Shown here: positions 3,901-42,329 of the stretch, in pieces
Numbering within the stretch: the stretch's first letter is position 1
Layout of the letters: each line of letters begins with the position of its first letter
DNA from: Caecitellus pseudoparvulus
Taxonomy: Eukaryota > Protista > Bigyra: Bicosoecida
DNA length: 64,000 bases
Assembly: GCA_965644315.1 (NCBI GenBank)
Contig: CBFFRQ010000019.1
Coordinates: 186,001 to 250,000, forward strand
Reading direction: 5' to 3'
Notes under the pieces: model-generated
The model's input: the letters and a program-made list of their open reading frames with translations, nothing else
Databases searched by the model: none
Told to the model about the DNA's origin: nothing
Position numbers and translations under genes: made by a program

Positions 3901-5789
3901 ACAGCGTGACTGGCCAGGGCTAGAGCGGCGTCAGCCTTGGCGTTGGAGTCAGCTTTGCTCTCTGCACCTGGCCCCGTCTGGCTGACTGCCGTTGAAGTGC
4001 GCACGGTGCTGTAGTGCAGCTGCACCCGCTGCAAGAGCACTCGAGCAGAGGAGAGGGGCGACGTCTGGCTGCCAGCTCCAGAGGACGAACCTGCTGCTGC
4101 AAGGATGTCATGCAGGGCCCAGAAACTTGGCATGGGGTGCGCAGGGGCAAAGGCAGACGCGTCAATGGCGGCTAAGAGCTCCTGCAGACCGGGGCAGAGC
4201 GTCTCTCGCAGGTACTGCGCAAAGTACTGCGTAATCAGGCTCGAGTGGCGGCGAACAAGCGCAGATATGGCAGCCACCTGCCCCACCAGCACAGCCAAGT
4301 GGTCATCTTCGTACTCATCAGCGGTCCACAACTCATGCGAAGATGTGGATAGAGTGAAGACTGCCGCCGCTTTCTTTGGCCCGCGCCCAGAATGCTGCGC
4401 CAGCCACACTGCCTCGCCTCGAGCAGCCCCGAGGAAAGCCCACACTATGGGCAACTTTGGGCCCAGCAGACCTGGCGCAGAGCGCAGCAGCTCATACAGC
4501 CGCTGGCCTTCTTGCCGGAGCATGAGCCGCGCGAAAGCATGGGCCCGGCCGGCGGTCACCACAGCGGCTTTCTTGTGCTCTTTCAGGCGAGCCAGTGTGA
4601 TCTCGAAAGGGGGCTCCTTCAGTGCCGCAGTCACGCTTTGAGCTTGAGGGGACTGGGCTTCCGAGAGGTACTTCAAGTGGGCGGCCCACTCCTCATGCTG
4701 GAACAGGAAAACGTCCCTGAAGAGACAGATCAAGTAGTCAGCCTGCAACACGCTGTGTAACATGCCTGGCAGGGCGGAGCACTTGCCTTGGGACCGCACA
4801 AGGGCCACATGTGGCAAGCAAAGCAGCAGCACCACGCTCACAGCATCCCACACTCTGTGGTATTCCCCGACGGCAGCATGCTGAGCATCCACAGCCAGCG
4901 CATCCAAGGGCTTCCCCGTGCGAGCACCAATGTCACCAAGGGGGTCGAAAAGGAAGCGCCCCTTGCCGTGGAACAGCACCCGCTCCGCTGAAGTCAGCTG
5001 AAGGTACGTTGAGCAGGCACCTTGCAGGAGCAGCGTGCCCAGCGGCGCGACGTCCAGAGATGCTGCCACTGTGGCCCCTCCTGGTGCGCAAAGGTCGTTG
5101 ATGAGAGTGGCGAGGGGGGCATGAGCAGGGTCTTGCCGTTCTTGCGTTGTCCAGTGCACCACAGCGTGCAGCCCCGCCAACGCCTGCGCGTCCCCGGCCG
5201 CGCACCACCGCGCCAGGAGGTGCAACACTCTCCAGTGCAAGGCAGCCAGCTCGAGGACGTGAAGTGTGAAAGAGCGGCGCCCGCTTATCTGAGGGCATGC
5301 AGCAGTACGAAGCAAGCGTGAAGACACAGAAAAGCCGGCGCTTCGCGGGCACACACCGTCAAGTGCATGAGCTCTGTGGCCAGCTCAGCGAAGAGGGCCT
5401 TGACCTCTCCCCGGAGAGCGACGACAGACTGCAGCGTGCTCATAAAGGATGTCATTGATGGCAAGATACTGTAGTCCGCCGCCTTGAGCGCCGCCAAGTC
5501 CTTCGCATGTCCCTGCAAGGTGTGGCAGTGTGAGCAGTGTGCTGGTTGCACGCGACACACCCAGCGTTGGTCACCAGCGCACCTTCTCCAGAGCCTCTGT
5601 GTCCAAGCTCTCAGTGCAGTGTTTCTGCACAAACTTCCTGATACCAGAAATGTCGCTGCGGGTCAAGGCCTCAGGACGCCTTGAGGCGTCTTGGAGCTGT
5701 TCATAGTCGAGGTACAGGCATGTTGCCACGCCGCGAGCCTCGTCAAGCAACACCTCCACCCGCTCAGCCGTTGCTTGAGCGTCCGCCAT
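990..5789 (-). CDS. NCKAP1: Nck-associated protein 1 (NAP1/Hem), WAVE regulatory complex subunit; 3 exons
   Basis: Exon 1 reads MADAQATAERVEVLLDEARGVATCLY. Motifs LFRDVFLFQH, PGLLGPK.PIVWAFLGAARGEAVWL, EDDHLAVL...ITQYFAQYL and PGVES match NCKAP1. GT-AG introns follow ...ALEK and ...MHLT. Confidence 0.88.
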
Positions 5790-24223: not shown

Positions 24224-24811
24224 ATGCCGTCGTCCAGTTTGTCAGAAGATCCGAGGCGGCCTGAGGCCATCACCCGACTGCCGAAGGAGAACATAAACTC
24301 GGATGACATTCCTCCAAGTCTGTATGGCATGGCTAGCATGTTCTTGGGCATGGCAGGTGCGCTGGCAGCGATTTCCGCAGCTATCCACCTGCTTCTTGCT
24401 GTGCCTGCGGCGGTGACGGTGCCTGCACGGGTCCCCCGCAACGCTGTCACAGGATTGCTCATGCGGTACAAGCTCGCTGCATGGCTGGCGCTGTTCGCTT
24501 GCATGGCAAACATCGCCAACATGCGCACGGTGCGTGACACAGGTGGCTGTCCTGGCTATGCAAGGCAGCGCAGACTGCGCCCTTTCCGGCCCCTGCACAG
24601 GTCGAGTGGGACACACGCCAAGTCATCATGAACTTAGTGTGAGTGTTTTGCATTCCACGCGTCGCCTGGGCCTTCAATCGGACTTCCTCGCTCGACACGC
24701 AGCATTTCGCTGATGGGCTTGTTCACCTGTTACTTCACACCGGAGGGCCAGTCGGGACTGGCCTCGCTGCTGGGGCAGTCAAGCGGGTCTGCATCGAGCG
24801 GCGGATCGTAG
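24224..24811 (+). CDS. WDR83OS: PAT complex subunit Asterix (WDR83OS/UPF0139); 4 exons
   Basis: DPRRPEAI..DDIPPSLYGMASMFLGMA|GLLMRYKLAAWLALFACMANIANMRT|VEWDTRQVIMNLV|ISLMGLFTCYF. Confidence 0.88.
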
Positions 24812-40651: not shown

Positions 40652-40887
40652 CACTCGGGCAGCCAATTCACCACACCCAGTGACAATGCGCTGAGTTGGA
40701 AGAGTTACAGGTGGAGGCACGCTGGTTGAGCTCGCCCCCCCCCGCCTCTCTCCCTTTTTGCGGACACTCCGCTACAGGCATAGACACACGTGGAGCCAGG
40801 GCAAGCCAACACGCCACCCCTGCACTGCGGCTGGAGCCGACGCCGGGCCTGCGTGAGGCTCGCGTGCAACAAAGGAAGGCGTAAAGA

Positions 40888-41946
40888 ATGGATCAGGTGA
40901 ATTTGCTGGACTGGTACCACAGCATTCCGCCTGTGACCAGGGTTCTATTCACAGCGTCGATGGCCATCACTGCTGCTTGCGCTCTGGACATGCTGTCTCC
41001 GTTTTCCCTGTACTACAACTACTCCCTCATCTGGGAGCGAGGAGAGGTGAGAAAGCACACAGTTCATGGGATTTACCAAACCCTGGTGCCTTTCGGAGTT
41101 CGCTCGACCCGGCAAGCGCTCGCGCCCTGCGTTGTCTTTCGTTTGCGTAACGCCGCCGAAACGCGGCCAACTCCCCGCCCGCGCAGGTGTGGCGCCTCGT
41201 CACAAACTTCCTCTTCTATGGCCGCTTCGGCATCGACTACATTTTCCACATGTACTTCTGTGAGCTTCTCTGCCCGCGTCGTCTTCTGGCTGCGGGGCGT
41301 GCATGCACTCTCTCCCGCTCACGTCACGCAGTGTGAGCCCCCTTCTGCTAGACCTATACCGCGGTGCAAGGCGTGCCACATGGCCCCACCCTTCACCCCT
41401 TCCCAATTACAGTGTACGCTTCGCAAGTGCCCTGGAACATAGCTCCTTCAGGCGCCAAGTGGCTGACCACCTTTGGTTCTTGACACTGGGCGGGGCATTT
41501 TTTATGGTGCGTTGCCCCCTTGCTGCTCGACAAGTCTCGCCGCTTGCGGCGTATTCAACGACCCTGGGGCGCGTTCCTCGCAGAGTATAGCGCCGTGGGT
41601 GCCCATGCACTTCTTCGGATCTGCACTGACGTTCATGATGGTGTATGTGTGGGCCAGGCGCAATCCCCACGAGCGAATGGCCATGCTGGGTGTGGTTCAC
41701 TTTGACGCGCCTTGGCTGCCGTGGGTGTACTTCAGCCTCTCCCTCTTGCTTGGTCAGACAGTACTGGTGGACCTCATGGGCATAGCCGCTGGCCACACGT
41801 ACTTCTTCTTCCAGGATGTCCTGCCTGCGGTGTGTGCTTCGCGGGGCTGGGCGCCGGTTCAGCCGCTCTCTGCCCCCTCAGCTCTCAAGTTCTTGCTGGG
41901 GCAGCAGGACCACCCTGCAGAGTTTCAAGTGATTCAAGGCGGGTGA
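40888..41946 (+). CDS. Derlin-2-like ERAD membrane protein; introns 41047-41186, 41260-41331, 41333-41412 and 41507-41583 (1-nt exon at 41332)
   Basis: WYHSIPPVTR..GE|VWRLVTNFLFYG..FHMYF(F)VRFASALEHSSFR..AD..|FFGSALTFMMVYVWARRNP..APWLPWV..DLMGIAAGHTYFFFQDV. Confidence 0.93.
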
Positions 41947-42329
41947 GCCTGCACGCTCCCCCCCTCCCACAGCCCAGGTTCGCGCCGTGTACGGCTGGCA
42001 CCAGCCAGCCACGAAGGCGGGCTGGTCTGCCCACCGCCCCCTGCACCGACAGGTTCCGCTGCCATTCAGACACTCGGAATACATCTCCATGCTCACCGCC
42101 CCACAAGAATCAATGCTTCTGACTGGTCCCCCGCCTACCACCTGCGAGTGCTTCTGTTTGCTTGACAGCAGCAGGGGGCGCGGTGTGGACAGGACTGCGA
42201 GCGTGGCGTGGCAACGCTTGCAGCGCGAAGTGCTTGGTCGGATCTCCCCCCCAAGCCACTGAATTGGCCTGCTACACACACAGTAACAACTATTCCTATT
42301 GTCAGCTTCTTGCAACCGCCGCTTGCATC

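Follow-up and report, generated by a model that had tools for sequence, protein, structure and literature searches.

Exons of one base show that exon definition by the spliceosome is possible when virtually all exonic information is missing, and in the literature searched the known families of one-base spliceosomal exons are plant APC11, plant VPS55 and Fusarium CYP621A. In Arabidopsis thaliana, the single-nucleotide exon of APC11, to which a first-pass annotation of the DNA studied here had already pointed as a documented case, was indeed proven by mutating the base (Guo & Liu 2015, PMC4674806). The 1-nt exons of APC11 and VPS55 have been described across land plants (Yu et al. 2022, PMC8831610). 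In addition, a one-nucleotide exon has been reported in the CYP621A gene of Fusarium (Nelson & Syed 2026, PMC12940212), in a paper that calls it the second known example, overlooking the VPS55 exon of plants.

Here we report that a T at position 41332 of the window (the whole stretch of 64,000 nucleotides that was analysed), inside a Derlin gene, is very probably a genuine one-nucleotide spliceosomal exon, lying between two complete short GT-AG introns (a, 72 nt, and b, 80 nt) that are both removed to give the codon TTT. Exons of this kind are already documented and form a very small class, to which the Derlin T adds a new lineage; our literature search found no case of a one-base spliceosomal exon in a protist or an alga.

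The Derlin locus shares with APC11 the presence of a single base between an AG and a GT inside an interval annotated as one intron, and in both genes the base is needed for the frame, constitutive in cDNA, missed by annotation and conserved between species. The two cases differ in the base itself, which is an A in APC11, and in the size of the neighbouring introns, the upstream intron of APC11 being 333 nt long, while the Derlin introns are both short, measuring 72 and 80 nt in the window and, in the closest relative L014, 58 and 65 nt. Moreover, the APC11 exon belongs to a plant and its proof is the mutation of the base, whereas the Derlin exon belongs to a marine protist, probably non-photosynthetic, and the evidence for it consists of transcript contigs and comparative data. 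With the VPS55 exon of plants (PMC8831610), the Derlin T has in common its location in a small multi-pass membrane protein and a conserved GTRAGT-type donor following the microexon; unlike the VPS55 microexon of early land plants, which is alternatively used via intron retention, it occurs in contigs that display no alternative form. As in CYP621A (PMC12940212), the one-nucleotide exon provides the middle base of a codon between two short introns, which total about 139 nt in the fungal gene, and its recognition resembles that of the CYP621A exon, which was inferred from a frame deficit with respect to an intron-less relative, confirmed by public RNA reads and found to be conserved genus-wide. 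The host genes are different, CYP621A being a rarely expressed fungal P450 of secondary metabolism and the Derlin gene a housekeeping gene of another eukaryotic lineage. A one-base exon confirmed by RNA sequencing is likewise described for placozoan mitochondrial cox1 (PMC5436844), a single-base-pair exon that is organellar and not spliceosomal. To these systems, the Derlin case adds a housekeeping gene of endoplasmic-reticulum quality control which is expressed in cultures and in seawater, with both flanking introns near minimal size and the same layout predicted in a related species.

Recursive splice sites of Drosophila and vertebrates, in which an acceptor abuts a donor (YAG/GTRAGT), lead to the removal of a long interval in two steps; at these ratchet points, found in very long introns, use of the second donor has to await the first ligation, and zero bases are left. 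The Derlin site cannot be considered a ratchet point in the strict sense, since one base is kept and acceptor and donor do not abut; unlike ratchet points, it also lies between two introns that are both near minimal size, and their stepwise removal is presumed. In the stwintrons of filamentous fungi, an inner intron interrupts a splice signal of an outer one and the two are removed sequentially from one interval. The Derlin introns would also leave a single interval in sequence, but each of them has complete GTGAGC..YAG signals of its own, and the stwintron reading was consequently discarded.

Gene model and position of the one-base exon

Derlins have a role in endoplasmic-reticulum protein quality control. 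The Der1-like (Derlin) gene examined here occupies positions 40888-41946 (+) of the window, which has a GC content of 61% and forms part of contig C19 in a genome assembly of 30.6 Mb and 215 contigs. The protein is encoded in five coding pieces, and the features of the gene are the following:

40888..41046, + strand: Derlin exon 1; ATG at 40888; 53 codons; DER1 profile positions 1-38, 33.5 bits
41047..41186, + strand: intron 1; 140 nt, GTGAGA..CAG; skipped in the X13 and X2 contigs, partly retained in X1
41187..41259, + strand: exon 2; 24 codons plus T (base 1 of the split Phe codon); DER1 positions 42-65
41260..41331, + strand: intron a; 72 nt, GTGAGC..CACGCAG; missing from the X13, X1 and X2 RNA contigs
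41332, + strand: very probable one-nucleotide exon T; base 2 of the Phe codon TTT
41333..41412, + strand: intron b; 80 nt, GTGAGC..TTACAG; missing from the RNA contigs; three population SNPs
41413..41506, + strand: exon 3; T (base 3 of the Phe codon) plus 31 codons, VRFASALE...; RNA contig pieces span 41413-41505/6
41507..41583, + strand: intron 4; 77 nt, GTGCGT..CGCAG; RNA joint 41505 to 41583, which with the cut moved by +1 is 41506/41584
41584..41946, + strand: exon 4; 120 codons plus the stop TGA at 41944-46; DER1 positions 104-179, 73.7 bits

The RNA joint between exons 1 and 2 runs from 41044 to 41185, that is, 41046/41187 after the cut is moved by +2. Together, the coding pieces amount to 159+73+1+94+363 = 690 nt, corresponding to 230 codons including the stop. 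Protein searches were run exon by exon and the reading frame was checked by arithmetic. Against the Pfam DER1 profile (PF04511), with a cut-off of 26.6 bits, exons 1 (33.5) and 4 (73.7) score above the threshold, while exon 2 taken alone (21.4) is below it. The WR and GxxxG motifs are family-defining marks of rhomboid-like pseudoproteases. The WR motif is found inside exon 2, whose translation reads VWRLV...HMYF, and a GxxxG-type motif, GIAAG, is carried by exon 4, in which the DER1 match begins at residue 7. Judged by its DER1 profile match and by the presence of both motifs, the gene is a member of the Der1-like/Derlin family. The neighbouring gene is VMP1, which on comparison with protein clusters matched broad eukaryotic ones only.

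Exons 2 and 3 are separated by an interval of 153 nt (41260-41412), in which the acceptor AG at 41330-41331 is followed by T41332 and by a second GTGAGC donor at 41333-41338, the next acceptor AG being located at 41411-41412. The single T, in the context CAG/T/GTGAGC (41329-41338), leaves an intron of 72 nt on its 5' side and one of 80 nt on its 3' side, sizes that are ordinary for this gene, whose other introns measure 77 and 140 nt. Intron a has canonical GT..AG ends and a CTCAC branch-like motif 10 nt 5' of its AG. These donors, acceptors and the central T, as well as the division into two introns of 72 and 80 nt, are all present as the first-pass annotation had described them. Its placement of the end of exon 2 at 41260 was right as to the sequence and one base off as to the position, given that the last exon base is 41259 and that 41260 is the first base of the intron.

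A direct join of 41259 to 41413 shifts the frame and leads to a TGA after 22 codons, as that annotation had also stated, and read-through from exon 2 meets a TGA at 41333-35. Conversely, T41259, T41332 and T41413 together form TTT (Phe), and exon 3 is kept in frame. Exon 2 ends at DER1 position 65 and the first residue of exon 3 falls at about position 67 of the profile, as counted back from exon 4 over the 31 residues of exon 3; therefore, one residue is lacking between the two exons. At this site, the DER1 profile and about 70 relatives leave room for one residue, no more and no fewer, in agreement with the earlier proposal that the product has the length of the Derlin consensus.

Among the 35 T residues of the interval, T41332 is the sole one with AG before and GT after it, and the probability of an AG-T-GTRAG composite, estimated from 200,000 shuffles of the interval, is about 0.0005. 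A search of the whole window with the loose motif YAGNGTRAGY returned 5 matches versus 4.5 expected, hence no enrichment; the other matches (n=4) bear no sign of a one-base exon, and the one at 24635 fits an ordinary donor. Accordingly, it is the frame and the RNA evidence, and not motif statistics, that make the T41332 site significant. A second exact copy of CAGTGTGAGC lies at positions 5526-5535 (+) of the window, where frame inspection is compatible with an ordinary donor as well as with another tiny exon.

Transcript contigs and competing explanations

The first-pass annotation had proposed that this organism splices a 1-nt exon, giving HMYF-F-VRFASALE, and that the corresponding junction should be sought in transcripts. 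The junction was found in contigs from three studies: in X13 (study P10), X1 (P1) and X2 (P2), position 41259 is followed by a single T and then by 41413. X2 is a seawater metatranscriptomic library; for two of the three runs the RNA label is a guess, and the RNA nature of the sequences rests on exact intron removal. Specifically, the X13 and X2 contigs are also devoid of introns 1 and 4, cut at their GT..AG borders, which indicates that they represent spliced mRNA. The X1 contig keeps the 3' part of intron 1, with introns a and b already gone, which is what an incompletely processed pre-mRNA would look like. The one-base T is present in all the spliced contigs, and no alternative form was seen in any contig; at the level of such assembled sequences (Logan), minor isoforms and intermediates of splicing are invisible, as is the order in which the introns leave.

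In the genome, the T found in the mRNA adjoins neither exon 2 nor exon 3. In addition, the genomic base at both borders is a G (41260 and 41412), so that the extra T does not come from a shifted donor or acceptor. Contigs display the product of a reaction and not its source, and this junction falls in a short T run (TTCT-T-TGT), which would suit the removal of a single 153-nt intron followed by the post-transcriptional addition of a U (insertional editing or slippage), or the recruitment of the T from elsewhere in the intron via non-canonical sites. We consider these possibilities very improbable: all the other T residues of the interval are without AG before and GT after, and a composite expected only about 0.0005-0.0009 times per interval is nevertheless shared by L014 and the window species, and it is the most conserved patch between introns that cannot be aligned. 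To our knowledge, U-insertion editing of nuclear mRNAs has never been reported.

It is slightly less probable still that the main product arises through another in-frame route. Two such routes, both with canonical GT/AG dinucleotides, can be drawn: donor 41260 may be joined to the in-frame acceptor AG at 41350-51, resulting in 21 codons instead of 1, or intron a may be retained and donor 41333 used, resulting in 25 codons instead of 1. Either route would place a loop in the membrane helix, whereas all relatives have exactly one residue here. No RNA coverage of 41279-41395 is observed in the X13, X1 and X2 contigs, and the use of the acceptor at 41351, which the first-pass annotation had put forward as the competing outcome, leaves no trace in them. 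Moreover, a variant common in the population, an A>G substitution at 41350 that is one of the three SNPs of intron b, turns the AG into GG in the DNA contig X12 and in four of six metagenome contigs (L006, L007, L008 and L011); it destroys this acceptor, to which intron b contains no other in-frame alternative.

Draft assemblies commonly contain one-base errors, and an error of this kind at an exon border could give one ordinary intron of 153 nt the appearance of breaking the frame; we attach hardly any weight to this explanation, also raised in the earlier annotation. X12 is a DNA assembly in which contigs reach 273 kb; its contig of 4151 nt is colinear with the window and differs from it by 8 substitutions, without any indel. 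Six further DNA contigs, taken from metagenome and Logan assemblies (L006-L011), also follow the window colinearly and gap-free from 40850 to 42000, with 2-5 mismatches. As seven independent DNA assemblies of the species, from several samples, are colinear and indel-free, an assembly error is not the cause. Across these assemblies, all 9 variant positions map to introns or to the 3' UTR and none to exons; the CAG/T/GTGAGC sequence is invariant in the six contigs, and no variant occurs at 41332 in any of the seven. The G at 41260 and 41412 likewise prevents the extra T from being read from either flank, and the same one-base deficit is found in the related species L014.

Finally, the guessed RNA labels could suggest that the intron-less contigs derive from a processed DNA copy (retrogene) and not from mRNA, an equally negligible prospect, because a whole-genome (G000) DER1 search returned two loci, this gene and a paralog on C52 that carries its own intron, and hence no processed copy that could mimic the mRNA, because X2 is metatranscriptomic, and because X1 contigs keep parts of intron 1, as a pre-mRNA would. 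In the paralog (G000:C52:17632-18376, - strand; loci L001/L003), DER1 positions 40-190 lie in one open frame, and thus no intron is present at the site that is split twice in the window gene. In conclusion, all the sequence-level properties of a single-nucleotide spliceosomal exon are found at T41332.

The layout has consequences for annotation, as gene callers split or truncate the Derlin gene, and in the output of spliced aligners the locus would appear as a frameshifting intron of 153 nt with an insertion of one base. Prokaryote-style gene calls divide the gene into a 184-aa ORF running through the introns (40888-41442) and a second call (41473-41946), in which a 113-aa ORF is nested in a 157-aa open frame. 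A full-length Derlin of this species was not found in a public collection of 5.8 billion proteins, which contains its ORF fragments only.

Predicted conservation of the layout in relatives

An alignment that combined exon 4 with two relatives was used to scan JGI metagenome contigs, and 80 loci were obtained. The closest relative, L014, is found on a 29.8-kb contig with 57% GC and shows 68% protein identity in exon 4. In the layout predicted from its DNA, exon 2 ends at T2726 and is followed by an intron of 58 nt (GTACGT..CAG), the single T2785, an intron of 65 nt (GTAAGC..CAG) and exon 3, which begins at T2851 with T GTG AGA. The comparison of Derlin orthologs suggested in the first-pass annotation yielded the same predicted arrangement in a second species. 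When the window species and L014 are compared, the block around the single T represents the longest conserved stretch between the exons, while the intron bodies cannot be aligned; the chance of the composite in the L014 interval is about 0.0009. From these sequences we infer that the one-base-exon layout is probably older than the split from the L014 species. When L014:2726-2851 is read through, the frame stays open by chance for 42 codons and agrees in phase with both exon 2 and exon 3, and intron retention there would consequently not truncate the protein.

In distant Derlins, wherever the region is continuous (transcript contigs and intron-poor genomes), one Leu codon (CTN or TTG) is found between HMYF and VRY. 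In five AT-rich genomic loci (L020, L032, L044, L045 and L080), a single phase-0 intron lies directly after that Leu codon. A codon split twice is seen in the window species and in L014 only, and there it reads TTT (Phe). Across Derlin lineages, three intron positions thus fall within three bases, a clustering that may be due to the sliding of introns or to their recurrent gain at a single site. Word searches for closer relatives returned ORF fragments and two short relatives, whose contigs end before the junction, and a scan of viral and prokaryotic genome contigs found no Derlin relatives.

Splicing order, origin of the introns and host

With introns as short as a and b, the splice sites may be paired across the intron (intron definition), in which case signals bridging the exon would be unneeded. 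The pairing of U1 at donor 41333 is predicted to cover about 41330-41338 and would overlap the AG of intron a; because of this overlap, the two introns would not be fully engaged together and would be removed one after the other. Following the removal of either one, the remaining intron would keep its signals, namely T/GTGAGC for intron b and CACGCAG/T for intron a. We thus infer a sequential, recursive-like removal of introns a and b, and this stepwise process would resemble recursive splicing with one base retained. As for an RNA structure joining the splice sites, nothing unusual emerged, the Z-scores ranging from -1.4 to +0.7.

With regard to origin, the first-pass annotation had read the matching splice contexts as a hint of intron duplication, a suggestion that our data do not bear out. 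Introns a and b are no more alike than shuffled sequences (global p=0.12, local p=0.36), so that a tandem duplication was rejected; an ancient duplication, since erased, is conceivable. The two L014 donors differ from each other (GTACGT versus GTAAGC), and the identity of the GTGAGC donors in the window is therefore hardly informative as to a common origin. An introner origin was also discarded, since a DNA search of G000 with 41260-41412 returned this locus alone. It is plausible that the second intron was gained one base away from an existing one, in a lineage that tolerates such close neighbours.

A broader reading is that the Derlin T represents one case of a genome-wide habit, in which the spliceosome works by pure intron definition and routinely tolerates exons of 1-2 nt; we regard this as possible, although the odds are rather against it. 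In such a genome, tiny exons would arise whenever a new intron inserts one or two bases from an old one. Should further micro-exons in this genome prove true, this protist would offer a favourable natural system in which to study intron definition and recursive-type splicing.

No match to LHC (chlorophyll a/b-binding, PF00504) genes was found anywhere in the 30.6-Mb assembly, which indicates that the host is probably a heterotrophic marine protist. Pelagomonas was rejected as the host, having 0.45 introns per gene, a peak of intron length at 210 nt and low-GC regions of 259 kb (PMC9481584). The heterotrophic protist may be travelling as a culture companion. The stretch turns up in seawater metatranscriptomes as well as in runs that carry the labels of seven different organisms.
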